64,000 nt of DNA, from the NCBI RefSeq assembly GCF_964204645.1, contig NC_134033.1, positions 2,872,131 through 2,936,130 on the forward strand. The letters run 5' to 3'. Below the pieces are notes generated by a model that saw only the letters and a program-made list of their open reading frames with translations, did no database searches and was not told where the DNA came from. The translations under genes were made by a program, and so were the position numbers. Position 1 is the stretch's first letter, and every line of letters starts with the position of its first letter. Below, one piece after another: positions 2,010 to 35,639 of this stretch. The DNA comes from Tubulanus polymorphus. Taxonomy: Eukaryota > Animalia > Nemertea.

Positions 2010-5000
2010 ATGCAGCGAATGAAAGCGTTGTTCGTAGTTTTACTGATCGCTTGCGGAGACTGTATATTTACGCGGGCTGATCGCGAAAACTCTGTCGAGG
2101 AAGCCGCGTCTGTTACAGTCAGTTCATCTTGTAACAACACTCAATACTCCGTCGATTCTACGTCTGGTTACATCGTTTCACCGAACTATCCGTCGTTAGT
2201 GCGCGGTGTTGAATGTCGTTGGTTCGTCAACAGCTCTTTACCGGGAAGTTTTCTTGTTCAAGTTTACTACGACATCGAGCCGTCGATATTCTGTAACGAA
2301 AACTACCTTCTCGTCGGTGAGTCCGACAACAAACTCTGCGCTACCGGAAGAAAACAACTAGATATCCGCAGAAACGATTTGATTTCGTTGTTGTTTAGGA
2401 GTAACGTCGATGGAGCGCGAGGTAGTCGGGTTTACATCATATATCGTTTTGAAGAACACAGTCGCTTGAAAATCTTAGACACATGTCATAAACGTGCAGT
2501 AAAAGAATTACCAACTCAAACAGGTTATGAATTCATGATTTCTACCCGGCGATGTAAATTGTTGTTAGAATGGATCGGGATGCCAGACGGGTTTGCAATG
2601 AATTTAACGTTTATAGAGATAGATTTCAGATTAAGTCCCGGAGAGGATCCAATGGAAACTCGTCCTCAAATTTACGACGGATGGAACAGCACCAGTGAAC
2701 CTATAGCTCTTATACGAGAACAAACCGGACATCCACCTTCATCGTTTTATATTAACACTAATAAAGCACGTATTGAATTTTTTTCAAATGCATTGCCACA
2801 TCTGAAGTCGAGGTTACTCGTGCAAGTTTACAAAATATCAGATTGGAGCATCTCTAACCCGTTAATTGAAGTCTATAATAAATCAGGACTGCTCACTACA
2901 ATTGATGGAATACCACATATAGTAACTCAGTCTAAACACTTATACTGCTGGTCTATCACAGTCGATGTTCTGCAGTACGTCGTCTTCAACTGGACACGTG
3001 ATCTCGTCTCGTCACCAGGTGTCGTTGGTGTATATAAACAGGAAGGGTTACGTATTGTGAGAACTGATATTTTACTCAGTTTTAACCATCTTAAATCTCT
3101 GAGTGTAAAATCAGACGGATTTCTCGTGATTCTGTGCGTTTTAACGACATCGGATTTTTTAAGATCGAATTTGGAAATAGAATTTGAGGTGAAATCAATG
3201 ACAATATCAGACGTCTACGTCAACAAGCCACAGATATGGGTAAGTTTATAACAATGTTTGGCAATTGGGTTTGTGTAATGCAATTATTGTAAAAGTCTAT
3301 GATTTTGATGGCGATTTTGACCAGTGAAACTTAACCGAGAAATTTCGAATAACAACGTTATGTGTGACCCAAATTTCAATATATTTGGACGCACATGTTT
3401 ACGCAGAGTAATTATGATGATTTGTGCAAGAATTTAAGTTAAGATTTAATTGCAACATTTTGAAGTATTATCGATATATCGAGGTCGTACAGAGTTTGAA
3501 TTTGTCGTATTGTAAACGAGTAAATGTTGTAATCAATTCTCTTATATTTCAGAATTCTAACACAAAATCAATATCAGCTAATCGCTTGTTCCCGAGATCA
3601 AAGAATACATTGTATCGTGTAACTAAATTACAACTAAACTGGAAAGTGAACATCTATGAAGAACAATTGAAACTAACAGTGCTATCAGAGAACTGTGATC
3701 GAGCTGGTTTTTATATATTTGATGGTAGTAATTTCACAGCTAGACGCTATGGTCCGTATTGTCCTGGTTCATACTACGGTCGATCTGTCGTCAGCCTGAT
3801 TACATCAGGTGGACCGGTTACTGTAGTAGCATACGCTTATTACTATAACAATCAGTTAACAGTTGGTAGCTCTTCTTCAATTTGCTCCTACTGATTGTGA
3901 CGGTTATGTTCTACAGGAAGAAGAACGTCAGATCAATATGACGTCACACTGTCTCGTGATTACACCTGAAAATCGACGCCTTCGCTCGAAAAATATTCAC
4001 ATATTATCGGAACACGAATATCAAATTGACCGATGTTTTCTCAAGATGTCATTGTCATGTGATCAGTTTCTGAGTTTGAGTAACCAGTTTCTTAATAACA
4101 GTCTCGTATTAAACACTGTAGATTTCACAGGTAATGAGTTTGGATTCTGGCAGTATCCACTAATAGATAAACTACGTCGTAAATGTCTAGGAGTGAAAAA
4201 AGCGGATAGTTTTGGACTTGCCGGTTCCCGTCTTCCAGTTACTACTAAAGATAAATGTGGACTCGTGCAGTCACCGAACTACCCGGGTGAGGCACGACGT
4301 ACATCAGAATCGATTTCCTATAAATTTGAAAACCCGTTACAACAAAATATATTTCAATATTACAGATTTATCGTCAAATCTATTGGATCAGTTTCATGCG
4401 AAACAGACAGATCCGGTCGAAATGATCCGATCATTTTGATACAATCAATCAATTACCAACCCTACCTAAATGGAAAAATATCTAAAATTATTAGTAACCA
4501 ACATGAAACTAAAATATGTGAAAATAACGCGGTTCGTGGATTTATATTTTATAGTTTAACAGATAATATTCTACGTTTTGAAGTAAACAATGGAATTCCG
4601 ACATTTCAAATACAATACACTTTACACGAGTCGTTACCGATTAAACATTTCGATGATTTCTACTGTAAACAAGAATTTCAGGATTCCGGAATTTCCTGCG
4701 TCAAATTCATCAGAGATGAACGTCTGAATTGGGAGAACGCTGAAATATACTGTAGACAGAAGTACGCGGGACATCTACTCAGTGTCAACTCAGAACAGGA
4801 AATGATTTCGATCAAAAGATTATTCGCTACAGAACTTCTCCGAACGGCGTACACATTAAAAGCGCTCATAATGATGATTGGATTGAAATGGCAGGTAAGA
4901 CTAATGTTTTCAAAAATTAATTCGAAAAGAAAGAATTTAAAAGAAATGATATATTTAATTTTCTTCACGAAACAGAATGATGGTTATTACACGTGGACTG

Positions 5001-8000
5001 ACGGTAAACCATTGAGCTACACAGAGTGGTATAAACCTGTTATTAATGAAACGATACCAGAAGTTATTCGAGGATTGATATCTCCGCTAAGAAAACAACC
5101 GATAAATGACGTCAATATGCCGTGTACGGCGATGATACTGAATAATCCACGAGGATCGGCGAACTGGGTTCGATTCCCGTGTCAAATCGAGGAGACGCAC
5201 ACGACATTCATTTGTGAATCTGAGAGAATCGACAGCAAAAATGAACACAATTCAACGATAAACGATGCGAACAATTCAACAAATACAGACTTAAATAAAA
5301 CCATAGATCAAATGATTCCCGATGTACCTTTAACTAATTCAACCTGTCCAAGAAGTTGGGTAACTATTTCGGGACAATGTTATCAAATACTAACCGACTG
5401 GAAAAACAATCGAGGTTTAAATATTCGGAGTGCTAGAGAAATGTGTCACAGCATCCGCGCCGAAATAGTAAGAATCACCTCAAATACAGAAAGCGACTTG
5501 AAAAATTTGATCAACGAATTTCAATATAGACATCAATATGGCGCTTTTCTGACGATGGACCGCGACGGGTTTAAAGTTATCAAACCAATGGTGACCAGAA
5601 ATGAATTTACTTATATTCAATCAGTTAAATGGTTATTGAAACCTTTCGATGATACAAAAGATAAAGTACATTCCGTGTTATGTACCTATAATGCAACTGC
5701 TGAGGAGTTAGCTTCTATAAGCGGCTGTAAATCGTGGCAGTTTGAATGTAACGATCAAAGATGCATCAGCGACCATCGCGTATGTGATAACAGAAACGAC
5801 TGTCAACACGGTGAAGATGAACTCGATTGTACGGATATCAATTTACACAGTCAGTTCCGCTGTAACGATGGACAGGTTATATCGATAAGCGGTTTCTGTG
5901 ACTTTATGAGAGATTGCGTCGATGGCTCGGATGAGAACTCGTGTTATCATCCACCGTGTTTATCTACGCGATATCGCTGTTCCAATCACCGATGCATCGA
6001 TAGTTATAAACGATGTGACGGACTAGCCAACTGTAAAGACGGTTCCGATGAGATCGGATGCACTGCCGAACTTTGTCAGGGATTCTCGTGCGCGGACGGT
6101 GAATGTATTAGTTCTCAGTTGTATCGGGATGGTGTCGTGGATTGTAGCGGAAGTCTCGAAGAAGACGAATTGGTCACCAATATGACAGTGAATCCCGAGG
6201 TTTACTGTAATAATGACAATCACTGTACGACTCGTTTCACAGATCTGTGTAAGGAATCGGATGAACAAAGATGTTCGTTCAATTCTCCTCGCTGTTATTC
6301 CCGACACGAAAGGTGTATTTTAGAAAGGATGCCGATTGGTTTCCCGGTATGTAGAAATCTTGAACATATACTCGCGTGTAATGACTTCGAATGCGCGGCT
6401 GGTACTGTAAAATGTCCGACATCTTACTGTATACCGATCAGACACGTTTGTGACGGTCGATCCGATTGTCCTAACTCAGAAGACGAACGCAACTGCGAGA
6501 CTTGGTCGTGTCCGGGAATGTTTAAATGCGGCCAGGAAAATCGATGTATTCCGCAATCTGAAGTTTGCGACGGTGTCGTAACCTGTAAGCATAACTCGGA
6601 TGACGAGACATACTGTAAGGTCAGGTGTCATGAACGTTGTAATTGCCGGGGTCATTTCATCGATTGTGAAAATGCTCTTTTATCGGATATTACTGGTCGT
6701 TTTATAGAATCAACTCGGGTTTTGATTTTGTCGAATAACCGAGTCGTATTTAACGAGTCGACGTTCAACTCTTTCATTTATCTTCGTTTTCTCGACATTT
6801 CGGGCAATAATTTGACTTACATCGTTCCAAACGCGTTTTCTAATCTAAACAATCTATTCACATTAGACCTGACTCACAACCGCATAACATCATTATCTGC
6901 TAATACATTCGCAGGTTTGATCGGTTTAAAAGAACTATTTCTTATCGGAAATCCGCTGCAACATTTAGAAGACGGTAGTTTTCGAGGTCTGGCGTCACTA
7001 ACTGTTCTCGATCTTCACGGACTTTCTATATCGATTCTCGGTGAAAATGTATTTAAAGGTTTATCCGCATTACAGTCGTTAAATATCAGCAGTAACAGAA
7101 TACATTATATTTCTAGCTATGCTTTTTCTGGATTGGTTCGACTTGAAATTTTAGACCTCGTCAACAATTTTGAAGTAATATCCGTACAAAGAAACGTTCT
7201 TGGCGATCTTACATCATTGAAATACCTCGCTTCGGATGCTTACAAATTTTGCTGCATGGCACCAAATGTTGACCGATGTCTTCCCGAAGCTGATCAATTT
7301 TCGACCTGCTCTGACCTGATGGGTAACACTGTACTGAGAGCCATCATCTGGATGATCGCATCTTTCAGTTTTCTCGCTAACAGTATCGTTATCTTATTTC
7401 GCGTTCAAGCTTTGCGGATGGAATCCTCCGGAACACGTAACACATCTTCAGATATCCTCATCATAAATATTGCCGGTTGTGATTTTCTGATGTCGGTCCA
7501 TTTGTTTTTGATCGCGGGAGCTGACCACGCGTTCAAAGGCGTTTATTATCTGAATTCTGAAACCTGGACGGATAGCTCATTATGTCGTCTCGCCGGGGTT
7601 ATTGTCACAGTTTCGTGCGAAGGTTCCTTGACTTTTCTCTTATTTCTAACACGTCAGAGATATTCAAATATCGTCAACCCATTTTCTAGAAGTCCGATTA
7701 TAACTCCGAAATACGTTATCGGTATTTGCTGCATTTGTTGGCTCGTTATAAGCACAGTTTCTATTCTACCGCTGTCATCATCGTCTTACTTCGGAGACAA
7801 TTTTTACGGTACAACCGGAGTCTGTTTGCCTATGAATTTACTGACGATCGACGTCAATGGCTGGCACTATTCATTCGCTATTTTTGCCTTGTTTAATGCG
7901 GCCATATTGGCTACGATAATGACGACGTACGCTCAGATGTATAGACTCGTATCTGGGAGTAGGTCGGGTTCGGGTAGAGCCGATCCTACCGAACTGGTTT

Positions 8001-8245
8001 TAGCTCGAAGGAGTTTAGTAATCAATCTTTGTAATCTATTCTGCTGGCTACCGATAATAATCGTTCAGTTTTGCGCCGTATTTACGGTCGAGATACCGAA
8101 CCAGGTGGCCGCTTGGCTGGCCGTTCTATTTTTACCGATCAACTCGTCTCTGAATCCGCTTCTTTATACAATACTAAATATCGATATAAAATCTATTCGT
8201 GAACGCAATAAACGACGACTAGGATTGACGACATCCAGTAAATAA
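2010..8245 (+). pseudogene. Copy 1 of CUB/CTL/LDLa/LRR-7TM GRL101-like GPCR; 2-nt deletion frameshift in exon 2 (~3870-3882)
   Basis: Exons 2010-3239 (TGG|GTAAGT), 3553-4894 (TTTCAG|AAT ... CAG|GTAAGA), 4976-8245 (AAACAG|AAT). Real start is ATG 2010 (or 2019), not the GTG at 2001. AGC-TCTTCTTCAA-TTTGCT is 2 nt shorter than copy 2 (AGC-TCATCTCTTAGA-TTTGCT), so the frame ends at TGA 3892-3894. Could be an assembly error. Confidence 0.8.
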
Positions 8246-10011: not shown

Positions 10012-13000
10012 ATGCAGCGAATGAAAGCGTTGTTCGTAGTTTTACTGATCGCTTGCGGAGACTGTATATTTACGCGGGCTGATCGCGCAAACTCTGTCGA
10101 GGAAGCCGCGTCTGTTACAGTCAGTTCATCTTGTAACAACACTCAATACTCCGTCGATTCTACGTCTGGTTACATCGTTTCACCGAACTATCCGTCGTTA
10201 GTGCGCGGCGTCGAATGTCGTTGGTTCGTCAACAGCTCTTTACCGGGAAGTTTTCTCGTTCAAGTTTACTACGATATCGAGCCGTCGATATTCTGTAACG
10301 AAAACTACCTTCTCGTCGGTGAGTCCGACAACAAACTCTGCGCTACCGGAAGAAAACAACTAGATATCCGCAGTAACGATTTGATTTCGTTGTTGTTTAG
10401 GAGTAACGTCGATGGAGCGCGAGGTAGTCGGGTTTATATTATATATCGTTTTGAAGAACAGAGTCGCTTGAAAATCATACATAAATGCTCAAAGCGTGCG
10501 GTAAAAGAATTACCAACTCAAACAGGTTATGAATTCATGATTTCTACCCGGCGATGTAAATTGTTGTTAGAATGGATCGGGATGCCAGACAGGTTTGCGA
10601 TGAATTTAACGTTTATACAGATAGATTTCAGATTAAGACCAGGTGAGGATCCGATGAAAACTCGTCCTCAAATTTACGACGGATGGAACAGCACCAGTGA
10701 ACCTATAGCTCTTATACGAGAACAAACCGGACATCCACCTTCATCGTTTTATACTAAAACTAATAAAGCACGTATTGATTTTTTTAGTAGAGTTAAGTCG
10801 CAGTTACTCGTGCAAGTTTACAAAATATCAGATTGGAACATCTCTAACCCGTTACTTCAAGTCTATAATAAATCAGGAGTGCTCACTACAATTGATGGAA
10901 TACCACATATAGTAACTCAGTCTAAACACTTATACTGCTGGTCTATCACAGTCGATGTTCTGCAGTACGTCGTCTTCAACTGGACACGTGATCTCGTCTC
11001 GTCACCAGGTGTCGTTGGTGTATATAAACAGGACGGATTACGTATTGTGAGAACTGATATTTTACTCAGTTTTAACCATCTTAAATCTCTGAGTGTAAAA
11101 TCAGACGGATTTCTCGTGATTCTGTGCGTTTTGACGACATCGGATTATTTAAGATCGAATTTGAAAATAGAATTTGAAGTGAAATCAATAACAATATCAG
11201 ACGTCTACGTCAACAAACCATGGATATGGGTAAGTTTATTACAGTGATTTGTAAATTGGGTTCGTGTAATAGAATCATTGTAATAGGGATTTTGAAATTG
11301 TTGTAGTGTTCAACGTGATAAAACTACGCAATAAATCGCGAGAGACGAATGAAATATAAGTCCCACAATCACAGCATCGAAAAAGATTTTAAAACATCAA
11401 AACTATTAAAATTTATTAAAAACCTCGAATTTTCGGTTTTATGCTAATAACCATTTTCAAGAGTGACTAAAAGTATGGCATTACACAGAATATATATCAA
11501 TTAACAAGGACACACAATATTGCACATAAAAACTAGGTGATATTGACCAGAAAGGAAATGTATAGGGACAAAAGTTTATTATGGGGGGAGGATTGTAAAC
11601 GTAAAAATTGATTGTAAACGTTCAATGCTGTTATCAATTTCCTGATATTTCAGAATGATGTAGGCGTGACAATAACAGCTGGTCACTTGTTCCCGAGATC
11701 AAAAAATACATTGTATCGTGTAACTACATTACAACTAAACTGGAAAGTGAACATCTATGAAGAACAGTTGAAACTAACAGTGCTATCAGAAAACTGTGAT
11801 CGAGCTGGTTTTTATATATTTGATGGTAGTAATTTCACAGCTAGACGCTATGGTCCGTATTGTCCTGGTTCATACTACGGTCGATCTGTCGTCAGCCTGA
11901 TTACATCAGGTGGACCGGTAACTGTAGTAGCATACGCTTATTACTATAACAATCAGTTAACTGTTGGTAGCTCATCTCTTAGATTTGCTCCTACTGATTG
12001 TGATGGTTATGTTCTACAGGAAGAAGAACGTCAGATCAATATGACGTCACACTGTCTCGTGATTACACCTGAAAATCGACGCCTTCGCTTGAAAAATATT
12101 CACATATTATCAGAACACGAATATCAAATTGACCGATGTTTTCTCAAGATGTTATTGCGATGTGATCAGTTTCTGAGTTTAAGTAATCAGTTTCTTAATA
12201 ACAGTCTCGTATTAAACACTGTAGATTTCACAGTTAATGGGTTTGGATTCTGGCAGGAACCACTAATAGTTAAACTACGTCGTAAATGTCTAGGAGTGAA
12301 AAAAGCGGATAGTTTTGGATTTGACAGTTCATTTTTTCCAGTTACTACTAAAGATAAATGTGGACTCGTGCAGTCACCGAACTACCCGGGTTCGGCAGGA
12401 AGTAAATCAAAATCTATTTCATATAAATTTGAAAACCCTATACAACAAAATATATTTCAATATTACAGATTTATTGTCAAATTTATTGGATCAGTATCAT
12501 GTGAAACAGACAGATTCGGTCGAAATGATCCGATTATTTTGATACAATCAATCAATTACGAACCCTTACATAATGGGAAATATTTCAAAACCATTGTAAC
12601 TCAACATGAAACTAAAGTATGTGAAAATAACGCGGTTCGTGGATTTATATTTTATAGTTTAAGAGGAAATACTCTGCGGTTTGAAGTAAACAATTTCATT
12701 CCGACATTTCAAATACAATACACTTTACACGAGTCGTTACCGATTAAACATTTCGATGATTTCTTCTGTAAACAAGGATTTCTGGAATCGGGAATTTCCT
12801 GCATCAAATTCATCAGAGATGAACGTCTGAATTGGGAGAACGCTGAAATATACTGTAGACAGAAGTACGCGGGACATCTACTCAGTATCAACTCAGAACA
12901 GGAAATGATTTCCGTCAAAAGAATTTTCGCTACAGAACTTCTGATGGCGTACACATTAAAAGCGCTCATAATGATGATTGGATTGAAATGGAAGGTAAGA

Positions 13001-16000
13001 CTAATGCATTCAAAAATTAATTAGAAAAGAAAGAATTTTAAAGAAATAATATATTTCATTTTCTTCACGAAACAGAATGATGGTTATTACACGTGGACTG
13101 ACGGTAAACCATTGAGCTACACAGAGTGGTATAAACCTGTCATTAATGAAACGATACCAGAAGTTATTCGAGGATTGATATCTCCGCTAAGAGAACAACC
13201 GATAAATGACGTGAATATGCCGTGTACGGCGATGATACTGAATAATCCACGAGGATCGGCGAACTGGGTTCGATTCCCGTGTCAAATCGAGGAGACGCAC
13301 ACGACATTCATTTGTGAATCCGAGAGAATCGACATCAAAAACGAACACAAATCAACGATAAACGACGCGAACAATTCAACGAATACACACTTAAATAAGA
13401 CTATAGATCAAATAATTCTCGATATTACTTTAATTAATTCAACCTGTTCAAGAGGTTGGGTAACTATTTCCGGACGATGTTATCAAATACTAACCGACTG
13501 GAAAAACAATCGAGGTTTGAATATTCGGAGTGCTAGAGAAATGTGTCACAGCATCCGCGCCGAAATAGTAAAAACCACCTCAAATACAGAAAGCGATAGG
13601 AAAAATTTGGTCAGTGAATTTCAATATAGACATCAATATGGCGCTATACTGACAATGGACCGCGACGGATTTAAAGTTATCAAACCATTGGTGACAAGAA
13701 ATGAAATTACTTACATTCAATCAGTTAAATGGTTATTGAAACCTTTCGATGATACAAAAGATAAAGCGCATTCCGTGCTATGTACCTATAATGTAACTGC
13801 TGAAGAGTTAGCTTCTATAAGCGGTTGTTAATCGTGGCAGTTTGAATGTAACGATCAAAGATGTATCAGCGACCATCGTGTATGCGATACCAGACACGAC
13901 TGTCAACACGGTGAAGATGAACTCAATTGTGCGGATATCAATTTACAAAGTCAGTTCCGCTGTAACGATGGACAGGTTATATCGATTAGCGGTTTCTGTG
14001 ACTTTATGAGAGATTGCGTCGATGGCTCGGATGAGAACTCGTGCTATCATCCACCGTGTTTATCTGCGCAATATCGCTGTTTCAATCACCAATGTATCGA
14101 TAGTTATAAACGATGTGACGGACTAGCCGACTGTAAAGACGGTTCCGATGAGATCGGCTGCACTGCCAAACTTTGTCAGGGGTTCTCGTGCGCGGACGGT
14201 GAATGTATTAGTTCTCAGTTGTATCGGGATGGTGTCGTGGATTGTAGCGGAAGTCTCGAAGAAGACGAATTGGTCACTAATATGACAGTGAATCCCGAGG
14301 TTTACTGTAATAATGACAATCACTGTACGACTCGTTTCACAGATCTGTGTAAGGAATCGGATGAACAAAGATGTTCGTTCAATTCTCCTCGCTGTTATTC
14401 CCGACACGAAAGGTGTATTTTAGAAAGGATGCCGATTGGTTTCCCGGTATGTAGAAATCTTGAACATATACTCGCGTGTAATGACTTCGAATGCGCGGCT
14501 GGTACTGTAAAATGTCCGGCATCTTACTGTATACCGATCAGACACGTTTGTGACGGTCGATCCGATTGTCCTAATTCAGAAGATGAACGAAACTGCGAGA
14601 TTTGGTCGTGTCCGGGAATGTTTAAATGTGGTCAGGAAAATCGTTGTATTCCGCAATCTGAAGTTTGCGACGGTGTCGTTAATTGTAAACATAACTCTGA
14701 TGACGAATCATACTGTAAGGTCACGTGTCCTGAGCGTTGTAATTGCCGGGGTCATTTCATCGATTGTGAAAATGCTCTTTTATCGGATATTACTGGTCGT
14801 TTTATAGAATCAACTCGGGCTTTGATTTTGTCGAATAACCGAGTCGTATTTAACGAATCGATGTTAAACTCTTTCATTTATCTTCGTTTTCTCGACATTT
14901 CAGGCAATAATTTATCTTACATCGTTCCAAACGCGTTTTCTAATCTAAATAATCTATACACATTAGACCTAACTCACAACCGTATAACATCATTATCTGC
15001 TAATACATTCGCAGGTTTGATCGGTTTAAAAGAACTATTTCTTATCGGAAATCCGCTGCAACATTTAGAAGACGGTAGTTTCCGAGGTATGACGTCACTT
15101 ACTGTTCTCGATCTTCACGGACTTTCTATATCGGTTCTCGGTGAAAATGTATTTAAAGGTTTATCCGCATTACAGTCGTTAAATATCAGCAGTAACAGAA
15201 TCCATTATATTTCTAGCTATGCTTTTTCGGGATTGGCTCGACTTGAAATTCTAGACCTTGTCAACAATTTTGAAGTAATATCCGTACAAAGAAACGTCCT
15301 TGGCGATCTTTCATCATTGAAATACCTCGCTTCGGATGCTTACAAATTTTGCTGCATGGCACCGAATGTTGACCGATGTCTTCCCGAAGCTGATCAATTT
15401 TCCACCTGTTCTGACCTGATGGGTAACACTGTACTGAGAGCCATCATCTGGATGATCGCATCTTTCAGTTTTCTCGCTAACAGTATCGTTATCTTATTTC
15501 GCGTTCAAGCTTTGCGGGTGGAATCCTCCGGAACACGTAACACGTCTTCAGATATCCTCATCATAAATATTGCAAGTTGTGATTTTCTGATGTCGGTCTA
15601 TTTGTTTTTGATCGCGGGAGCTGATCACGCGTTCAAAGGCGTTTATTATCTGAATTCTGAAACCTGGACGGATAGCTCATTATGTCGTCTCGCTGGGGTT
15701 ATTGTCGCCGTTTCCTGCGAAGGTTCCTTGACTTTTCTCTTAATTCTAACGCGTCAGAGATATTCAAATATCGTTAACCCGTTTTCTAGAAGTCCGATTA
15801 TAACTCCGAAATACGTTATCGGTATTTGCTGCATTTGTTGGCTCGTTATTAGCACCGTTTCTATTCTACCGCTGTCATCGTCGTCTTACTTCGGAGACAA
15901 TTTTTACGGTACAACCGGAGTTTGTTTGCCTATGAATTTACTGACGATCGACGTCAATGGCTGGCACTATTCATTCGCTATTTTTGCCTTGTTTAATGCG

Positions 16001-16345
16001 GCCATATTGGCTACGATAATGACGACGTACGCTCAGATGTATAAACTCGTATCTGGGAGTAGGTCGGGTTCGGGAAGAGCTGATCCTACCGAACTGGTTT
16101 TGGCTCGAAGGAGTTTAGTAATCAATCTTTGTAATTTATTTTGCTGGCTACCGATAATAATCGTTCAGTTTTGCGCCGTATTTTCGGTCGAGATACCGAA
16201 CCAGGTGGCCGCTTGGCTGGCCGTTCTATTTTTACCGATCAACTCGTCTCTGAATCCGCTTCTTTATACAATTCTAACTATCGATATGAAATCTATTCGC
16301 GAACGCAATAAACGACGACTAGGATTGACGACATCCATTAAATAA
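10012..16345 (+). pseudogene. Copy 2 of GRL101-like GPCR; premature stop (AAA>TAA) at 13829-13831
   Basis: Exons 10012-11229, 11654-12994, 13076-16345. All other full copies read SGC-K-SWQFEC; here GGT TGT TAA TCG TGG. The downstream LDLa/LRR/7TM frame is otherwise open. Confidence 0.82.
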
Positions 16346-20456: not shown

Positions 20457-23400
20457 ATGCAGGCAATGAAAGCGTTGTTCGTAGTTTTACTGATCGCTTG
20501 CGGAGACTGTATATTTACGCGGGCTGATCGCGCAAACTCTGTCGAGGAAGCCGCGTCTGTTACAGTCAATTCATCTTGTAACAACACTCAATACTCCGTC
20601 GATTCTACGTCCGGTTACATCGTTTCACCGAACTATCCGTCGTTAGTGCGCGGTGTTGAATGTCGTTGGTTCGTCAACAGCTCTTTACCGGGAAGTTTTC
20701 TCGTTCAAGTTTACTACGACATCGAACCGTCGATATTCTGTAACGAAAACTACCTTCTCGTCGGTGAGTCCGACAACAAACTCTGCGCTACCGGTAGAAA
20801 ACAACAAGATATCCGCAGTAACGGGTTGATTTCGTTTTTGTTTAGGAGTAACGTCGATGGAGCGCGAGGTAGTCGGGTTTATATCATATATCGTTTTGAA
20901 GAACAGAGTCGCTTGAAAAACATACGTACATGTCGCAAAAGTGCAGTAAAAGAATTACCAACTCAAACAGGTTATGAATTCGTGATTTCTACCCGGCGAT
21001 GTAAATTGTTGTTAGAATGGATCGGGATGCCAGACGGGTTTGCAATGAATTTAACGTTTTTACAGATAGATTTCAGATTAAGACCAGGTGAGGATCCGAT
21101 GAAAACTCGTCCTCAAATTTACGACGGATGGAACAGCACCAGTGAACCTATAGCTCTTATACGAGAACAAACCGGACATCCACCTTCATCGTTTTATACT
21201 AAAACTAATAAAGCGTGTGTAGAATTTGAAAATAAAGAGTGGTTTAAGTCGCAGTTACTCGTGCAAGTTTACCAAATATCAGATTGGAACATCTCTAACC
21301 CGTTAATTCAAGTCTATAATAAATCAGGACTGCTCACTACAATTGATGAAATACCACATATAGTAACTCAGTCTAAACACTTATACTGCTGGTCTATCAC
21401 AGTCGATGTTCTGCAGTACGTCGTCTTCAACTGGTCACGTGATCTCGTCTCGTCACCAGGTGTCGTTGGTGTTTATAAACAGGAAGGGTTACGTATTGTG
21501 AGAACTGATATTTTACTCAGTTTTAACCATCTTAAATCTCTGAGTGTAAAATCAGACGCATTTCTCGTGATTCTGTGCGTTTTAACGACATCGGATTTTT
21601 TAAGATCGAATTTGAAAATAGAATTCGAAGTGAAATCGATGACAATATCAGACGTCTACGTCAACAAGCCACAGATATCGGTAAGTTTATTACAGTGATT
21701 TATAAATTAGGTTCGTGTAATAGAATCATTGTAATAATCTATGATTTTGATGGCGATTTTGACCAGCGAAACTTTACCGAGAAACTTGGAATAACAACGT
21801 TATGTGTGACCCAAATTTCAATATATTTGGACGCACATGTTTACGCAGAGTAATTATGATGATTTGTGTAAGAATTTAAGTTAAGATTTGATAGCAACAT
21901 TTTGAACTATTATCAATATATCGAGGTCGTACAGAGTTTGAAATTATTGTATTGTAAACGTTCAATGTTGTAATCAATTCTCTTATATTTCAGCATTTAT
22001 CCAGAAACTCAATATCAGCTAATCGATTGTTCCCGAGTTCAAAGAATACATTGTATCGTGTAAATACATTACAACTAAAGACGAAAGTGAACATCTATGA
22101 AGATTGGTTGAAACTAACAGTGCTATCAGAGAACTGTGATCGAGCTGGTTTTTATATATTTGATGGTAGTAATTTCACAGCTAGACGCTATGGTCCGTAT
22201 TGTCCTGGTTCATTCTACGGTCGATCTGTCGTCAGCCTGATTACATCAGGTGGACCGGTTACTGTAGTAGCATACGCTTATTACTATAACAATCAGTTAA
22301 CAGATGGTGATCCCCGTTGGTCATCTCTTATATTTGCTCCTACTGATTGTGAAGGTTATGTTCTACAGGAAGAAGAACGTCAGATCAATATGACGTCACA
22401 CTGTCTCGTGATTACACCTGAAAATCGACGCCTTCGCTTGAAAAATATTCACATATTATCAGAACACGAATATCAAATTGACCGATGTTTTCTCAAGATG
22501 TCATTGTCATGTGATCAGTCTCTGAGTTTGAGTAATCAGTTTCTTAATAACAGTCTCGTATTAAACACTGTAGATTTCACAGTTAATGAGTTTGGGTTCT
22601 GGCAGTATCCACTAATAGTTAAACTACGTCGTAAATGTCTAGGAGTGAAAAAAGCGGATAGTTTTGGATTTGCCGGTTCCCGTCTCCCAGTTACTACTAA
22701 AGAAAAATGTGGACTCGTGCAGTCACCGAACTACCCGGGTTCGGCAGAATTTACATCAAAATCTATTTCCTATGAATTTGAAAACCCGATACAGCAAAGT
22801 ATATTTCAATATTACAGATTTATTATCAAATCTATTGGATCAGTTTCATGCGGAACAAACAACATACGTGAGAATGATCCGATCATTTTGATACAGCTGA
22901 TACAGTACTACCTCTTCCAAAATGGAAAACTGTTCAAAATTATTAGGACCCAACACGAAACTTTAATATGTGAAAATAACGCGGTTCGTGGACTTATATT
23001 TTATAGTCTAACAGATAATACTTTGCGTTTTGAAGTAAACAATTTCATTCCGACATTTCAAATACAATACACTTTACACGAGTCGTTACCGATTAAAGGT
23101 TTCGATGATGTCTACTGTAAACAAGGATTTCTGGATTCCGAAATTTACTGCATCAATTTCATCAGAGATGAACGTCTGAATTGGGAGAACGCTGAAATAT
23201 ACTGTAGACAGAAGTACGCGGGACATCTACTCAGTATCAACTCAGAACAGGAAATGATTTCCATCAAAAGATTATTCGCTACAGAACTTCTCCGAATGGC
23301 GTACACAATAAAAGCGCTGATAATGATGATTGGATTAAAATGGAAGGTAAGACTAATGTAATCAAATATGAATTAAAATCGAAATATTTTTAAAGAAGTG

Positions 23401-26400
23401 ATATATTTCATTTTCTTCACGAAACAGAATGATGGTTATTACACGTGGACTGACGGTAAACCATTGAGCTACACAGAGTGGTATAAACCTGTTATTAATG
23501 AAACGATACCAGAAGTTATTCGAGGATTGATATCTCCGCTTAGAAAACAACCGATAAATGACGTCAATATGCCGTGTACGGCGATGATACTGAATAATCC
23601 ACGAGGATCAGCGAACTGGGTTCGATTCCCTTGTCAAATCGAGGAGACGCACACGACATTCATTTGTGAATCTGAGAGAATCGACATCAAAAACAAACAT
23701 AATTCAACGATAAACGACGCGAACAATTCAACAAATACACACTTAAATAAAACCACAGATCAAATGATTCCCGATGTTACTTTAATTAATTCAACCTGTC
23801 CAAGAGGTTGGGTAACTATTACCGGACGTTGTTATCAAATACTAACCGACTGGAAAAACAATCGAGGTTTGAATATTCGGAGTGCTAGAGAAATGTGTCA
23901 CAGCATCCGCGCCGAAATATTAAGAATCAACTTAAATATAGAAAGTGATATGAAAAATTTGATCAACAAATTTCAATATCGCCATCAATATGGCGCTATA
24001 CTGACAATGGACCGCGACGGATTTAAAGTTGTCAAACCACTGGTGACCAAAAATGAAATTACTTATATTCAATCTGTTAAATGGTTATTGAAACCTTTCG
24101 ATAATACAAAAGATAAAGTGCATTCCGTGCTATGTACCTATAATGAAACTGGTAAAGAGTTAGCTTCTATAAGCGGTTGTAAATCGTGGCAGTTTGAATG
24201 TAACGATCAAAGATGTATCAGCGACCATCGCGTATGTGATACCAGACACGACTGTCAACACGGTGAAGATGAACTCGATTGTACGGGTATCAATTTACAC
24301 AGTCAGTTCCGCTGTAACGATGGACAAGTTATATCGATTAGCGGTTTCTGTGACTTTATGAGAGATTGCGTCGATGGCTCGGATGAGAACTCTTGCTATC
24401 ATCCACCGTGTTTATCTACGCAATATCGCTGTTCCAATCACCAATGTATCGATAGTTATAAACGATGTGACGGACTAGCCAATTGTAAAGACGGTTCCGA
24501 TGAGATCGGATGCACTTCCGAACTTTGTCAGGGGTTCTCGTGCGCGGACGGTGAATGTATTAGTTCTCAGTTGTATCGGGATGGTGTCGTTGATTGTAGC
24601 GGAAGTCTCGAAGAAGACGAATTGGTCACTAATATGACAGTGAATCCCGAGGTTTACTGTAATAATGACAATAACTGTACGACTCGTTTCACAGATCTGT
24701 GTAAGGAATCGGATGAACAAAGATGTTCGTTCAATTCTCCTCGCTGTTATTCCCGACACGAAAGGTGTATTTTAGAAAGGACGCCGATTGGTTTCCCGGT
24801 TTGTAGAAATCTTGAACATATGCTCACGTGTAATGACTTCGAATGCGCGGCTGGTACTGTAAAATGTCCGGCATCTTACTGTATACCGATCAGACACGTT
24901 TGTGACGGTCGATCCGATTGTCCTAATTCAGAAGATGAACGAAACTGCGAGACTTGGTCGTGTCCGGGAATGTTTAAATGTGGCCAGGAAAATAGATGTA
25001 TTCCGCAATCTGAAGTTTGCGACGGAGTCGTAAACTGTAAACATAACTCTGATGACGAGTCGTACTGTAAGGTCACGTGTCCTGAACGTTGTAATTGTCG
25101 GGGTCATTTCATCGATTGTGAAAATGCTCTTTTATCAGATATTACAGGTCGTTTTATAGAATCAACTCGGGTTTTGATTTTGTCGAATAACCGAGTCGTA
25201 TTTAACGAGTCGACGTTCAACTCTTTCATTTATCTTCGTTTTCTCGATATTTCGGGCAATAATTTGTCTTACATCGTTCCAAACGCGTTTTCTAATCTAA
25301 ACAATCTATACACATTAGACCTTACACACAACCGCATAACATCACTATCTGCTAATACATTCGCAGGTTTGATCGGTTTAAAAGAACTATTTCTTATCGG
25401 AAATCCGCTGCAACATTTAGAATACGGTAGTTTTCGAGGTCTGACGTCACTTACTGTTCTCGATCTTCACGGACTTTCTATATCGGTTCTCGGTGAAAAT
25501 GTGTTTAAAGGTTTATCCGCATTACAGTCGTTAAATATCAGCAGTAACAGAATACATTATATTTCTAGCTATGCTTTTTCTGGATTGGTTCGACTTGTTA
25601 TTCTTGACCTTGTCAACAATTATGAAGTAATATCCGTACAAAGAAACGTCCTTGGCGATCTTACATCATTGAAATACCTCGCTTCGGATGCTTACAAATT
25701 TTGCTGCATGGCACCGAATGTTGACCGATGTCTTCCCGAAGCTGATCAATTTTCCACCTGCTCTGACCTGATGGGTAACGCTGTACTGAGAGCCATCATC
25801 TGGATGATCGCAACTTTCAGTTTTCTCGCTAACAGTATCGTTATTGCATTTCGAGTTCAAGCTTTGCGGATGGAATCCACCGGAACACGTAACACATCTT
25901 CAGATATCCTCATCATAAATATTGCCGGTTGTGATTTTCTGATGTCGGTCTATTTGTTTTTGATCGCGGGAGCTGACCACGCGTTCAAAGGCGTTTATTA
26001 TCTGAATTCTGAAACCTGGACGGATAGCTCATTATGCCGTCTCTCAGGGGTTATTGTCACCGTTTCGTGCGAAGGTTCCCTGACTTTTCTCTTAATTCTA
26101 ACGCGTCAGAGATATTCAAATATCGTCAACCCGTTTTCTAGAAGTCCGATTATAACTCCTAAATACGTTATCGGGATTTGCTGCATTTGTTGGCTCGTTA
26201 TGAGCACAGTTTCTATTCTACCGCTGTCATCGTCGTCTTACTTCGGAGACAATTTTTACGGTACAACCGGAGTTTGTTTGCCTATGAATTTACTGACGAT
26301 CGACGTCAATGGCTGGCACTATTCATTCGCTATTTTTGCCTTGTTTAATGCGGCCATATTGGCTACGATAATGACGACGTACGCTCAGATGTATAGACTC

Positions 26401-26697
26401 GTATCTGGAAGTAGGTCGGGCTCGGGTAGAGCCGATCCTACCGAACTGGTTTTAGCGCGAAGGAGTTTAGTAATCAATCTTTGTAATCTATTTTGCTGGC
26501 TACCGATAATAATCGTTCAGTTTTGCGCCGTATTTTCGGTCGACATACCGAACCAGGTGGCCGCTTGGCTGGCCGTTCTATTTTTACCGATCAACTCGTC
26601 TCTGAATCCGCTTCTTTATACAATACTTACAATCGATATGAAATCTATTCGTGAACGCAATAAACGACGACTAGGATCGACGACATCCAGTAAATAA
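20457..26697 (+). CDS. Copy 3, intact GRL101-like (type C LGR) GPCR, ~1948 aa
   Basis: Exons 20457-21680, 21994-23346, 23428-26697 with GT-AG phase-0 introns. Motifs: signal peptide MKALFVVLLIACGDC; CUB (SGYIVSPNYPS, CGLVQSPNYPG); CTL (WENAEIYC..GHLLS..IGL..WTDG..FICE); LDLa (C..DC.DGSDE); LRRs (LxxLDLxxNxI); hinge YKFCC..DQFSTCSDL; TM7 LPINSSLNPLLYT. Confidence 0.92.
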
Positions 26698-29391: not shown

Positions 29392-32300
29392 ATGCAGCGA
29401 ATGAAAGCGTTGTTCGTAGTTTTACTGATCGCTTGCGGAGACTGTATATTTACGCGGGCTGATCGGGCAAACTCTGTCGAGGAAGCCGCGTCTGTTACAG
29501 TCAGTTCATCTTGTAACAACACTCAATACTCCGTCGATTCTACGTCTGGTTACATCGTTTCACCGAACTATCCGTCGTTAGTGCGCGGTGTCGAATGTCG
29601 TTGGTTCGTCAACAGCTCTTTACCGGGAAGTTTTCTCGTTCAAGTTTACTACGACATCGAGCCGTCGATATTCTGTAACGAAAACTACCTTCTAGTCGGT
29701 GAGTCCGACAACAAACTCTGCGCTACCGGAAGAAAACAACTAGATATCCGCAGTAACGATTTGATTTCGTTGTTGTTTAGGAGTAACGTCGATGGAGCGC
29801 GAGGTAGTCGGGTTTATATCATATATCGTTATGAAGAACAGAGTCGCTTGAAGATCTTACATACATGTTCAAAACATGCAGTTAACAAAATACCAACTGA
29901 AACAGGTTATAAATTCACGATTTCTACCGCGCGATGTAAATTGTTGTTAGAATGGATCGGGATGCCAGACGGGTTTGCCATGAATTTTACGTTGTTACAG
30001 ATAGATTTCAGATTAAGACCAGGTGAGGATCTAATAAATACTCGTCCTCAAATTTACGACGGGTGGAACAGCACCAGTAAACCTATAGCTCTTATACGAG
30101 AACAAACCGGACATCCACCTTCATCGTTTTATACTAAAACTAATAAAGCACGTATTGAATTTATTTCAAAAGGATACCCATATTTTCAGTCGAAGCTACT
30201 CGTGCAAATTTACAAAATATCAGATTGGAACATGTCTAACCCGTTAATTCAAGTCTATAATAAATCAGGACTGCTCGCTACAATTGATGGAATACCACAT
30301 ATAGTAACTCAGTCTAAACACTTATACTGCTGGTCTATCACAGTCGATGTTCTGCAGTACGTCGTCTTCAACTGGACACGTGATCTCGTCTCGTCACCAG
30401 GTGTCGTTGGTGTATATAAACAGGAAGGGTTACGTATTGTGAGAACTGATATTTTACTCAGTTTTAACCATCTTAAATCTCTGAGTGTAAAATCAGACGG
30501 ATTTCTCGTGATTCTGTGCGTTTTAACGACATCGGATTTTTCAAGATCGAATTTGAAAATAGAGTTTGAAGTGAAATCAATCACAATATCAGACGTCTAC
30601 GTCAACAAGCCAAGGATATCGGTAAGTTTATTACAGTGATTTGTAGATTAGGTTCGTGTAATAGAAGCAATGTAATTATCTATATTTTTATGGCTATTTT
30701 GACCAGTGAAACTTTACCGAGAAACTTGGAATAACAACGTTATGTGTGACCCAAATTTCAATATATTCGGACGCACTCGTTGTTTACGAGTAATTATGAT
30801 GATTTGTGGAGGATTTTAAGTTAAGTTTCGATAGCTACATTTTGAACTATTATCAATATATCGAGGTTGTACAGAGTTTGAAATTGTTGTATTGTAAACG
30901 TTTAATGCTGTAATCAATTCCCTTATATTTCAGTTTACGGTTTACTGGTTATCAGCTAATCGATTGTTCCCAAGATCAAAGAATACATTGTATCGTGTAA
31001 CTACATTACAACTAAACTGGAAAGTGAACATCTATGAAGAACAGTTGAAACTAACAGTGCTATCAGAAAACTGTGAGCGAGCTGGTTTTTATATATTTGA
31101 TGGTAGTAATTTCACAGCTAGACGCTATGGTCCGTATTGTCCTGGTTCATACTACGGTCGATCTGTCGTCAGCCTGATTACATCAGGTGGACCGGTTACT
31201 GTAGTAGCATACGCTTATTACTATAACAATCAGTTAACAGTTGATCGTTCTGTCCGGTCATCTCTTGAATTTGCTCCTACTGATTGTGACGGGTATGTTC
31301 TACAGGAAGAAGAACGTCAGATCAATATGACGTCACACTGTCTCGTGATTACACCTGAAAATCGACGCCTTCGCTTGAAAAATATTCACATATTATCAGA
31401 ACACGAATATCAAACTGATAAATGTTTTCTCAAGGTGACATTATTATGTGAACAGTTTCTGAGATTAAGTAATCGGTTTCTTAATAACAGTCTCGTATTA
31501 AACACTGTAGATTTCACAGGTGGGTTTGTATTCTGGCAAGAACCACTAATAGTTAAACTACGTCGTGAATGTCTAGGAGTGAAAAAAGCGGTTAGTTTTG
31601 GATTTCTTGGATCCCGTCTTCCAGTTACTACTAAAGATAAATGTGGACTCGTGCAGTCACCGAACTACCCGGGTCGGGCAGGACTTACATCAGAATCTAT
31701 TTCCTATAAATTTGAAAACCCGATACAACAAAAAATATTTCAATATTACAGATTTATTGTCAAATTTATTGGATCAGTTTCATGCGAAACAAACAGCAGG
31801 GTCGAGAATGATCCGATCATTTTGATACAAACAATAAATTACGACCTCTTTCTAAATGGAAAATATTCCAAAACCATTTTAACCCAACATGAAACTAAAA
31901 TATGTGATAATAACGCGGTTCGTGGACTTATATTTTATAGTTTAACAGATAATACTTTGCGTTTTGAAGTAAACAATTACATTCCGATATTTCAAATACA
32001 ATACACTTTACGCGAGTCATTACCGATTAATGATTTCGATGATTTTTACTGCAAACAAGGATTTCTGGATTCCGGGATTTCTTGCATCAAATTCATCAGA
32101 GATGAACGTCTGAATTGGGAGAACGCTGAAATATACTGTAGACTGAAGTACGCGGGACATCTACTCAGTATCAACTCAGAACGGGAAATGATTTCCATCA
32201 AAAGATTATTCGCTACAGAACTTCTCCGAATGGCGTACTCATTAAAAGCGCCCATAATGATGATTGGATTGAAATGGCAGGTAAGACTAATGTTGGCAAA

Positions 32301-35300
32301 TATATATTAGAAAAGTAAGACTTTTAATGAAAAATTGTTAAATAATTTATCATTTTGTTCACGAAACAGAATGATGGTTATTACACGTGGACTGACGGTA
32401 AACCATTGAGCTACAACGAATGGTATAAACCTGTTATTAATGAAACGATACCAGAAGTTATTCGGGGATTGATATCTCCGCTGAGAAAACAACCGATAAA
32501 TGACGTCAATATGCCGTGTACGGCGATGATACTGAATAATCCACGAGGATCGGCGAACTGGGTTCGATTCCCGTGTCAAATCGAGGAGACGCACACGACA
32601 TTCATTTGTGAATCTGAGAGAATCGACATCAAAAACAAACACAATTCAACGATAAACGATGTGAACAATTCAACAAATACAGACTTAAATAAAACCATAT
32701 ATCAAATTATTCCCGATGTTACTTTGATTAATTCAACCTGTCCAAGAGGTTGGGTAACTATTTCCAGACAATGTTATCAAATACTAACCGACTGGAAAAA
32801 CAATCGAGGTTTGAATATTCGGAGTGATAGAGAAATGTGTCACAGCATCCGCGCCGAAATAGTAAGAATCACCTCAAATACAGAAAGCGACTTGAAAAAT
32901 TTGATCAACGAATTTCAATATCGACATCAATATGGCGCCATACTGACAATGGACCGCGACGGATTTAAAGTTATCAAACCACTGGTGACCAGAAATGAAA
33001 TTACTTATATTCAATCAGTTAAATGGTTATTGAAACCTTTCGATATTAGAAAAGATAAAGCGCATTCCGTGTTATGTACCTATAATGAAACTGGTGTAGA
33101 GTTAGCTTCTATAAGCGGTTGTAAATCGTGGCAGTTTGAATGTAACGATCAAAGATGTATCAGCGACCATCGCGTATGTGATATCAGACACGACTGTCAA
33201 CACGGTGAAGATGAACTCGATTGTACGGATATCAATTTACATAGTCAGTTCCGCTGTAACGATGGACAGGTTATATCGATTAGCGGTTTCTGTGACTTTA
33301 TGAGAGATTGCGTCGATGGCTCGGATGAGATTTCGTGCTTTCATCCACTGTGTTTATCTACGCAATATCGCTGTTCCAATCACCAATGCATCGATAGTTA
33401 TAAACGATGTGACGGACTAGCCAACTGTAAAGACGGTTCCGATGAGATCGGATGCACTACCAAACTTTGTCAGGGGTTCTCGTGCGCGGACGGTGAATGT
33501 ATTAGTTCTCAGTTGTATCGGGATGGTGTCGTGGATTGTAGCGGAAGTCTCGAAGAAGACGAACTGGTCACTAATATGACAGTGAATCCCGAGGTTTACT
33601 GTAATAATGACAATCACTGTACGACTCGTTTCACAGATCTGTGTAAGGAATCGGGTGAACAAAGATGTTCGTTCAATTCTCCTCGCTGTTATTCCCGACA
33701 CGAAAGGTGTATTTTAGAAAGGACGCCGATTGGTTTCCCGGTATGTAGAAATCTTGAACATATACTCGCGTGTAATGACTTCGAATGCGTGGCTGGTACT
33801 GTAAAATGTCCGGCATCTTACTGTATACCGATCAGACACGTTTGTGACGGTCGATCCGATTGTCCTAATTCAGAGGATGAACGAAACTGCGAGACTTGGT
33901 CGTGTCCGGGAATGTTTAAATGTGGCCAGGAAAATCGATGTATTCCGCAATCTGAAGTTTGCGACGGCGTCGTAAATTGTAAACATAACTCTGATGACGA
34001 GTCATACTGTAAGGTCACGTGTCCTGAACGTTGTAATTGCCGGGGTCATTTCATCGATTGTGAAAATGCTCTTTTATCAGATATTACTGGTCGTTTTATA
34101 GAATCAACTCGGGTTTTGATTTTGTCGAATAACCGAGTCGTATTTAACGAGTCGACGTTCAACTCTTTCATTTATCTTCGTTTTCTCGATATTTCGGGCA
34201 ATAATTTGTCTTACATCGTTCCCAACGCGTTTTCTAATCTAAACAATCTATACGCATTAGACCTTACTCACAACCGCATAACATCATTATCTGCTAATAC
34301 ATTCGCAGGTTTGATCGGTTTAAAAGAACTATTTCTTATCGGAAATCCGCTGCAACATTTAGAATACGGTAGTTTTCGAGATCTGTCGTCACTAACTGTT
34401 CTCGATCTTCACGGACTTTCTATATCGGTTCTCGTTGAAAATGTATTTAAAGGTTTATCCGCATTACAGTCGTTAAATATCAGCAGTAACAGAATACATT
34501 ACATTTCGAGATTTGCTTTTTCTGGATTGGTTGGACTTGAAATTCTAGATCTCGTCAAAAATGCCGAAGTGATATTTGTAAAAAGAAACGTTCTTGGCGA
34601 TCTTACATCATTGAAATACCTCGCTTCGGATGCTTACAAATTTTGCTGCATGGCACCGAATGTTGACCGATGTCTTCCCGAAGCTGATCAATTTTCCACC
34701 TGTTCTGACCTGATGGGTAACGCTGTACTGAGAGCCATCATCTGGATGATCGCATCTTTCAGTTTTCTCGCAAACAGTATCGTTATTTTATTTCGCGTTC
34801 AAGCTTTGCGGATGGAATCCTCCGGAACACGTAACACATCTTCAGATATCCTCATCATAAATATTGCCGGTTGTGATTTTCTGATGTCGGTCTATTTGTT
34901 TTTGATCGCGGGAGCTGACTACGTGTTCAAAGGCGTTTATTATCTGAGTTCTGAAACCTGGACGGATAGCTCATTTTGTCGTCTGGCCGGGGTTATTGTC
35001 ACCGTTTCGTGCGAAGGTTCCTTAACTTTTCTCTTAATTCTAACGCGTCAGAGATATTCAAATATCGTCAACCCGTTTTCTAGAAGTCCGATTATAACTC
35101 CGAAATACGTTATCGGTATTTGCTGCATTTGTTGGCTCGTTATAAGCACAGTTTCTATTCTACCGCTGTCATCGTCGTCTTACTTCGGAGACAATTTTTA
35201 CGGTACAACCGGAGTTTGTTTGCCTATGAATTTACTGACGATCGACGTCAATGGCTGGCACTATTCATTCGCTATTTTTGCCTTGTTTAATGCGGCCATA

Positions 35301-35639
35301 TTGGCTACGATAATGACGACGTACGCTCAGATGTATAGACTCGTATCTGGAAGTAGGTCGGGCTCGGGTAGAGCCGATCCTACCGAACTGGTTTTAGCTC
35401 GAAGGAGTTTAGTAATCAATCTTTGTAATCTATTTTGTTGGCTACCGATAATAATCGTTCAGATTTGCGCCGTATTTTCGGTCGAGATACCGAACCAGGT
35501 GGCCGCTTGGCTGGCCGTTCTATTTTTACCGATCAACTCGTCTCTGAATCCGCTTCTTTATACAATACTAACTATCGATATGAAATCTATTCGTGAACGC
35601 AATAAACGACGACTAGGGTTGACGACATCCAGTAAATAA
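29392..35639 (+). CDS. Copy 4, intact GRL101-like GPCR, ~1948 aa
   Basis: Exons 29392-30621, 30934-32280, 32370-35639. Intron 2 is 89 nt (not a multiple of 3), so it must be spliced to keep the frame. Same domain motifs as copy 3. Confidence 0.92.

Follow-up and report, generated by a model that had tools for sequence, protein, structure and literature searches.

What allows short stretches of a receptor to differ between almost all copies of its gene while the sequence around them stays alike? This question is raised by a tandem array of large receptor genes in the ribbon worm Tubulanus polymorphus, which we analysed over a window of 64,000 nucleotides (nt) (the whole stretch under study; forward strand of contig NC_134033.1, positions 2,872,131 to 2,936,130, assembly GCF_964204645.1; coordinates below count from the first letter of the window). 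Self-comparison of the window reveals a ~6.5-kb unit, present as five full copies and one fragment with ~94% identity. A first-pass annotation had described six hypervariable patches (A to F) in the CUB region of the encoded ectodomain, likened them to complementarity-determining regions (CDRs) and proposed diversifying selection on ligand-contacting loops, so that variable recognition modules would be displayed on a constant signalling unit. Here we find that the patches are genuine, that as a group they change at neutral-like rates, that they hold old silent divergence and that their versions are exchanged between copies as mosaics. The explanation towards which we lean, as a fairly probable one, is that the patches are permissive, near-neutral loops shuffled between copies on a homogenised scaffold.

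Variability is concentrated in short patches

The gene consists of three exons, of ~410 codons (exon 1), ~447 codons (exon 2) and 1084-1091 codons (exon 3), separated by two phase 0 introns with GT-AG ends. Our statistics rest on 41 copies, comprising those in the window and 36 taken from elsewhere in the genome; exons 1 and 2 are open in 32 of the 41, and it is on these 32 that the rate tests, picked to tolerate recombination, were run. The amino acid strings that had been given for patches A to F in copies 1, 2, 3, 4 and 6 were all recovered by translation at their places. In copy 1 the patches are as follows.

2778-2813, forward strand: patch A, FFSNALPHLKSR, 8 to 13 residues across copies
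3553-3576, with the last codon of exon 1 at 3237-3239, forward strand: patch B, NSNTKSIS, abutting the splice acceptor
3862-3880, forward strand: patch C, containing a frameshift
4289-4303, forward strand: patch D, EARRT, directly 3' of an SPNYPG motif
4400-4420, forward strand: patch E, ETDRSGR, after a conserved cysteine
4445-4498, forward strand: patch F, SINYQPYLNGKISKIISN

The frameshift in patch C, also reported earlier, lies near 3877-3881; it is followed by a premature stop at 3892-3894, and exon 2 of this copy measures 1342 nt. Copy 1, to which the coordinates of the original finding belong, is therefore a probable pseudogene.

The concentration of variability in the patches holds across the 32 copies, where 62 codons (7.2%) account for 32% of the nonsynonymous pairwise differences. 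The variance of nonsynonymous diversity between successive alignment intervals is 3.9 times the shuffle mean, a value reached in none of 5000 shuffles, and the lag-1 autocorrelation of nonsynonymous diversity is 0.46. Distinct amino acid versions number 20 for patch A, 29 for B (the most variable), 27 for C, 21 for D, 19 for E and 26 for F, so that nearly every copy is unique. Patch F has an alternating pattern of conserved and variable residues about an NGK turn, in the manner of a beta-hairpin. There are further variable zones beyond the six patches, at amino acids (aa) 151-180 and 201-210 of exon 1 (2460-2549 and 2610-2639 of the window) and at alignment columns 181-225, 241-250 and 361-380 of exon 2. 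Column 376, before the last strand of the final CUB-like module, holds 8 amino acids.

Patch B lies at an exon boundary, and we considered whether it might be intronic, with the acceptor shifted. This was rejected: the acceptor TTATATTTCAG is nearly invariant, each of the 32 versions keeps the frame, and use of the next AG would break the phase. The segment in question, the last ~25 nt of intron 1 (3528-3552), is nearly invariant in all copies and adjoins patch B without transition. In copy L024, an extra CATTCAG duplication creates a second possible acceptor.

The contrast between scaffold and patches can also be seen in unassembled data. In an independent raw DNA run matched at ≥97% identity, scaffold bins reach 250-520x and patch and intron bins 0-13x, with a single copy at ~7x. 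Calling alleles from the reads is confounded by cross-mapping between paralogues, and three of the four runs consist of short DNA-like unitigs. In the same raw DNA run and at the same identity, intron 1 of copy 4 (30653-30943) has almost zero depth, and the patch regions of exon 2 of copy 4 are at about single-copy depth. Intron 1 of copy 4 may differ or be missing in the sequenced animal, which may reflect copy or allele variation between individuals.

As a group, the patches change like unconstrained sequence

Pooled over the patches, synonymous and nonsynonymous pairwise diversity (piS and piN) are 0.324 and 0.312, a ratio of 0.96 (bootstrap confidence interval (CI) 0.76-1.22). The corresponding values are 0.089 and 0.046 (ratio 0.52) in the rest of exons 1 and 2 and 0.10 and 0.033 (ratio 0.32) in exon 3, where the part encoding the seven transmembrane helices (7TM) has a ratio of nonsynonymous to synonymous rates (dN/dS) of 0.1-0.2. 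Patch piS is 3.6-fold scaffold piS. Diversity at codon positions 1, 2 and 3 is 0.317, 0.325 and 0.303 in the patches and 0.048, 0.045 and 0.070 elsewhere in exons 1 and 2; four-fold sites give 0.187 in the patches versus 0.063 in the rest. Introns 1 and 2, with diversities of 0.26 and 0.20, are at about patch level. Given the equal diversity of the three codon positions and the raised silent diversity, the patches therefore resemble constraint-free sequence as old as the introns, and the scaffold is young even at its silent sites. The description of the scaffold as nearly identical even at silent sites was overstated, with silent diversity at the values given above for scaffold and exon 3.

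The combination of a ratio of 1 or less with equally raised dS is the one that the first-pass annotation had itself named as contrary to its proposal, and the general claim of diversifying selection on the patches as a whole therefore fails. We also compared synonymous and nonsynonymous rates by grid likelihood, with a separate local tree for each of 44 blocks; over all patches the ratio is 1.00. None of the 887 sites passes Benjamini-Hochberg correction for nonsynonymous excess; 11 lean towards such an excess at p<0.05 uncorrected, and 75 lean in the opposite direction.

Outside the patches, diversity follows the exon boundaries: it is 0.06-0.10 at silent sites of the exons, 0.20-0.26 in the introns and 0.3-0.5 in flanking DNA past the stop codon. 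Homogenisation is essentially confined to the exons, and repair limited to them, with complementary DNA (cDNA) as the template, may be a cause.

Patch versions are exchanged between copies

Over 2.57 kb, a recombination screen gives a minimum of 92 events; the four-gamete test fails for 30% of informative site pairs. The distance matrices of the six patches are correlated neither with one another nor with scaffold segments (Mantel p>0.1), and the Spearman r between patches ranges from -0.15 to 0.11. A Sawyer-type run test identifies shared tracts of significant length, judged by permutation, in 101 of 496 pairs, where 5 would be expected; these tracts span 170-690 nt, patches included. For these recombination statistics alone, the codon alignments of the two exons were joined as columns.

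Reassortment is visible in the individual versions. Copies L010, L011 and L030 have the same version of patch A, and L030 shares its patch B with copy 3, its patch C with L011 and its patch D with copy 4, which in turn has the patch E of L009 and L011. Some of the copies that share such mosaics lie >1 Mb apart and on opposite strands. Patch versions act as cassettes passed between copies. Mosaic exchange and low silent divergence in the flanks, two features of concerted evolution with islands of divergence, are both seen here.

These observations are consistent with a mechanism in which the patches would accept any residue as well as in-frame length changes, with dN/dS near 1, and exchange between copies together with purifying selection would hold the scaffold similar, silent sites included. 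Since constrained sequence stays alike, it would keep exchanging, and its silent sites would thus be homogenised too. Introns, intergenic DNA and the permissive loops, on the other hand, would drift beyond the identity that exchange needs, presumably near-identity, and would retain old lineages. Occasional long tracts would then move whole patch versions to other copies; because exchange would also spread patch versions in this way, almost every copy would come to have its own combination.

Ratios in patches B, C and D lean above 1, a possible sign of selection for diversity

The pooled ratio covers patches that differ from one another. In pairwise comparison, patches A, E and F give ratios of 0.86 (piS 0.323, piN 0.276), 0.93 (piS 0.374, piN 0.350) and 0.59 (piS 0.487, piN 0.286), and patches B, C and D give 1.47 (CI 1.09-2.30), 1.28 (intact copies) and 3.07 (CI 1.27-4.75). 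The likelihood ratios are 1.43 for A, 2.0 for B (p = 0.04), 2.14 for C (p = 0.11), 2.67 for D (p = 0.02), 1.0 for E and 0.71 for F. Diversity in patches C and D is clearly lower at third codon positions than at first and second ones.

Several results weigh against a neutral account of the patches. Some codons hold 6-8 amino acids with the third base fixed, such as the last of patch C and the first of patch D, which encodes 8 amino acids and keeps its third base. Furthermore, when each distinct single-base change was counted once, over links between patch versions at most 3 bases apart, recent changes in all patches stand at 96:16 nonsynonymous to synonymous (ratio 1.74, p = 0.02), and those in B, C and D combined at 55:6 (ratio 3.2, p = 0.0016 uncorrected); the same method yields a ratio of about 1 for A, E and F and 0.53 for the scaffold. 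In a held-out set of 28 copies outside the window, with the polymorphisms visible to the first-pass annotation removed, the ratio is 1.5-2.9 for all patches (p = 0.008-0.08) and 1.8-7.0 for B, C and D (p = 0.0004-0.058), where the ranges reflect the distance threshold and the lean is less firm. The depth of divergence points the same way, in that silent sites of patches and introns are 3-4x deeper than those of the scaffold even though the shared tracts carry patches. Pure neutral exchange predicts equal depth at neutral sites, and patch variants must therefore be lost more slowly for some reason. Selection for diversity would explain this slow loss as well as mismatch-limited exchange would; possible causes of the depth gap are mismatch-limited exchange, selection against variant loss, background selection and exon-limited repair. 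Finally, the 32 copies analysed are a sample of roughly 300.

An unbiased scan of 173 ten-codon intervals ranks patch B first (p = 0.015), and none of the intervals survives correction. Per-site minimum-change counts, along paths that favour silent steps, give no amino acid excess in any patch. Patches B, C and D are possible candidates for selection for diversity, not demonstrations of it. Overall, the earlier interpretation stands in its picture of variable modules on a constant unit, is contradicted in its claim of patch-wide selection, and is left with a lean in these three patches.

Weighing the explanations

The principal alternative to near-neutral loops is that the patches are ligand-contacting loops under diversifying or diversity-maintaining selection, with exchange reassorting the variants into a combinatorial repertoire. 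We regard this as possible, if distinctly the less likely of the two. It accounts for the ratios above 1 that three methods give for B, C and D, for the codons that vary widely in amino acid while the third base stays the same, for near-unique patch versions in every copy and for reading frames that are kept despite many length changes. A divergence peak amid ongoing gene conversion is, moreover, a published signature of selection for difference: theory on duplicated genes treats such a peak as a mark of selection, and exon 5 of the human red and green opsins is a short divergence peak with homogenised flanking introns, from which selection was inferred in that case (PMC3924837). The worm genes share with the opsin islands studied by Innan and co-workers the similarity of paralogues kept by exchange and the short divergence peaks that include silent sites. 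They differ in that the patch ratio is about 1 and that the homogenised flanking introns which mark a selected peak are not seen, introns 1 and 2 being as diverged as the patches; unconstrained sequence can therefore diverge deeply here without selection. The patch-wide ratio of 0.96-1.00, which reflects an equal rise in silent and amino acid diversity, also argues against selection, as do the lack of any lean in A, E and F (pairwise 0.59-0.93, recent changes about 1) and the finding that no site or interval passes multiple-test correction. In addition, the limits of the patches were set by eye on amino acid differences, which biases the ratios upward.

Sharp patch edges, equal diversity at the codon positions and many small length changes are what a mutational process targeted to the patches might also produce, whether as germline or somatic hypermutation or as templated diversification. 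We consider such a process very unlikely, since patches and scaffold do not differ in their spectrum of base changes or in CpG share (p = 0.14) and the introns are equally diverged. Identical versions recur in copies >1 Mb apart, and the patch regions of copy 4 are at about single-copy depth, and the variants are therefore stable germline sequence; somatic generation of variants, which a true analogy with CDRs would imply, was rejected accordingly. The least credible explanation is an artefact of pseudogene decay, assembly errors or misalignment. The frameshift of copy 1 does lie inside patch C, about 4 in 10 of the sampled copies are broken somewhere, and length-variable patches are hard to align. 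Against this, the analysis was confined to 32 copies in which exons 1 and 2 are open and all length changes keep the frame; variation falls at the same positions in every copy, and the independent raw reads repeat the depth map of scaffold and patches. Near-neutral loops shuffled on a homogenised scaffold thus remain the reading towards which we lean.

A relaxin-receptor-like core with a divergent CUB-like ectodomain

For domain assignment the exons were searched and folded separately, with copy 4 as the reference. The CUB label is firm for the first module (aa 38-150 of exon 1), which matches cubilin (3kq4_B, E = 4.1e-8) and MASP-3 (3dem_A, E = 1.9e-4), and which scores 18-19 bits against Pfam CUB (PF00431), just below the cut-off of 21.4. 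The leads to CUB are weaker for the modules that contain the patches (aa 151-410 of exon 1 and aa 1-366 of exon 2). They have no Pfam match at E up to 10, and no CUB is found among their matches in PDB profile or single-sequence searches; the PDB matches for the last module were dismissed as chance-level (E = 0.6). Comparison of the six putative modules with hhalign gives no significant pair, and against the first module only the SPNYP motif aligns. The leads are threefold. The SPNYPG motif stands immediately ahead of patch D, CUB occurs in 22-23 of the 30 language-model neighbours (0.92-0.94) of exon 2 aa 1-120 and aa 232-366, and Foldseek, run on an exon 2 model with a mean predicted local distance difference test (pLDDT) of 38, ranks the CUB1-EGF-CUB2 region of C1r/C1s/MASP first (E = 2e-4, TM 0.18-0.29).

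A HMMER search of exon 2 against 1.84 billion representative proteins returned 10 weak matches, 9 of them on the start of the C-type lectin domain. The tenth, P0004 (query aa 279-349), was set aside as a Calx-beta protein with neither a CUB nor a lectin domain. With no relatives beyond the lectin start, no deeper alignment was available for folding, and AlphaFold2 models from alignments of the 32 paralogues reach a pLDDT of 37.6 for exon 2 and 28.0 for exon 1, too poor to map the patches in three dimensions. In the exon 2 model, at low confidence, patches C, D and E lie in coil and patch F across a hairpin. Changes in the length of patch versions keep the frame, and Gly, Pro, Asn, Ser and Asp are frequent in them. 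Together with the alternation in patch F and the placement in the model, these features argue against disordered linkers and for structured surface loops, and the patches are probably surface loops of divergent CUB-like modules.

The C-terminal part is clearer. Exon 3 of copy 4 matches Pfam Ldl_recept_a (E = 4e-33, 5 stretches), LRR_8 (E = 1e-27) and 7tm_1 (E = 4e-23), and the best solved relative of its leucine-rich repeat (LRR) and 7TM parts is human RXFP1 (7tmw_R, E = 5.4e-72). LDLa repeats before an LRR ectodomain and a rhodopsin-family 7TM form the layout of a type C LGR (leucine-rich repeat-containing G-protein-coupled receptor). Judged by these sequence matches, the core is a G-protein-coupled receptor (GPCR) of relaxin-receptor/GRL101 type. 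The first-pass picture of a constant signalling unit fitted with variable modules is borne out, with the strongly conserved 7TM within an LDLa-LRR-7TM core.

The gene family and its copies in the window

The encoded receptor has ~1,940 residues; its gene, like the others of its very large tandem family, has three exons. In the 268-Mb genome, a scan with exon 1 gave at least 40 scored copies, with 94-96% identity, of 335 candidate sites. All three exons are open in 23 of the 41 copies studied; a further copy, L029, was taken with a sequence that ended before the end of the gene. In intact copies exon 1 measures 1218-1233 nt and exon 2 1314-1356 nt, all in frame. The predicted splice model is supported by conserved GT-AG sites, by the phase kept throughout and by frames open in 32 copies. 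No sequencing run recorded as RNA matched the stretch, and a join of exon 1 to exon 2 was not observed in the reads.

Exon 1 of copy 1 is predicted to encode a signal peptide, the CUB module at aa 38-150 and two more beta-rich modules, with patch A in the second. The boundary between exons 2 and 3 divides a C-type lectin domain: its first half follows the CUB-like modules in exon 2, and its second half opens exon 3, ahead of a lectin-like region, LDLa repeats, LRR and the rhodopsin-type 7TM. The copies in the window are laid out as follows.

1901, 9904, 20348, 29286, 38465 (fragment) and 56884, forward strand: starts of the units by self-comparison
2010..3239, forward strand: copy 1 exon 1, an open reading frame (ORF) of 410 codons, intact, with a GT donor at 3240
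3240..3552, forward strand: copy 1 intron 1, phase 0
3553..4894, forward strand: copy 1 exon 2, 1342 nt, frameshifted
4976..8245, forward strand: copy 1 exon 3, 1089 codons plus stop
10012..16345, forward strand: copy 2, with exon 1 (10012-11229) and exon 2 (11654-12994) intact and exon 3, from 13076, broken
20457..26697, forward strand: copy 3, all exons open (20457-21680, 21994-23346, and 23428 onward with 1089 codons)
29392..35639, forward strand: copy 4, all exons open (29392-30621, 30934-32280, 32370-35639)
38465..39461, forward strand: copy 5, a fragment with the 5' part of exon 1 only
56993..63206, forward strand: copy 6, all exons open (56993-58219, 58536-59879, and 59952 onward with 1084 codons)

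Exon 3 of copy 2 is split into three ORFs near 13831-14006, and this copy is therefore probably a pseudogene. Upstream of copies 4 and 5 there are coding fragments for transmembrane helices TM3-TM4 that match 7587-7791 of copy 1; they lie at 28898-29079, 37721-37868 and 37868-38031, the latter two as a tandem pair before copy 5. The gap between copies 5 and 6 contains satellite arrays at 49398-49820 (a 44-nt unit, x10), 50330-51203 (strongly purine-rich units of 53/129/235 nt) and 52658-52900 (units of 20/71 nt), and GC skew reaches 0.42 over 50-52 kb, in the purine-rich satellite region.

Relation to known systems

Plant NLR and R-gene clusters and the peptide-binding regions of the major histocompatibility complex (MHC) are tandem paralogues in which hypervariable stretches are exchanged and the signalling part is constant; their hypervariable residues lie on a known binding face, with dN/dS clearly above 1. 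The worm family resembles them in clustered variability, exchange and a constant core, but its patch-wide dN/dS is not above 1. With the CUB domains of cubilin, C1r/C1s/MASP and neuropilin it shares the first module, which matches cubilin and MASP-3, and the position of patch D after SPNYPG, whereas the patch-bearing modules fail Pfam CUB, PDB profile and profile-profile comparison.

The closest counterpart in receptor type comes from apple snails, where 29-132 tandem GRL101 genes are expressed in tentacles and labial palps and have been read as serving environmental sensing (PMC6573481). Receptors of this type in gastropods have in common with the worm genes LDLa repeats, LRR, a rhodopsin-type 7TM and tandem expansion. 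Compared with them, the worm family is larger, counting its 335 candidate sites, and far more uniform, and its receptor has a long N-terminal extension that is CUB-like and lectin-like, the patch-bearing part of which has no detectable relatives among the 1.84 billion representative proteins searched. Receptor type and tandem expansion are thus already known from gastropods, as is patchy divergence under gene conversion from other genes; what sets the worm family apart is its scale, its uniform scaffold, an orphan ectodomain of CUB-like modules and loop versions that reassort like cassettes.

The family may be a sensory or recognition repertoire. We entertain, tentatively, the idea that the patches are contact loops of a germline combinatorial repertoire, whose versions are kept by selection and reassorted among ~300 paralogues. 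If so, plant NLR clusters would have an animal counterpart made of GPCRs, used by a ribbon worm for chemical sensing or to tell self from non-self, and a large set of sensors would have been built by reshuffling short loop versions on a constant GPCR core instead of by divergence of whole genes. We know of no ligand for this receptor type in any invertebrate. The family also carries a caution, in that CDR-like patchiness by itself is no proof of selection for diversity. As it stands, it offers a clean natural example of exchange that homogenises constrained sequence while loops and introns run free.

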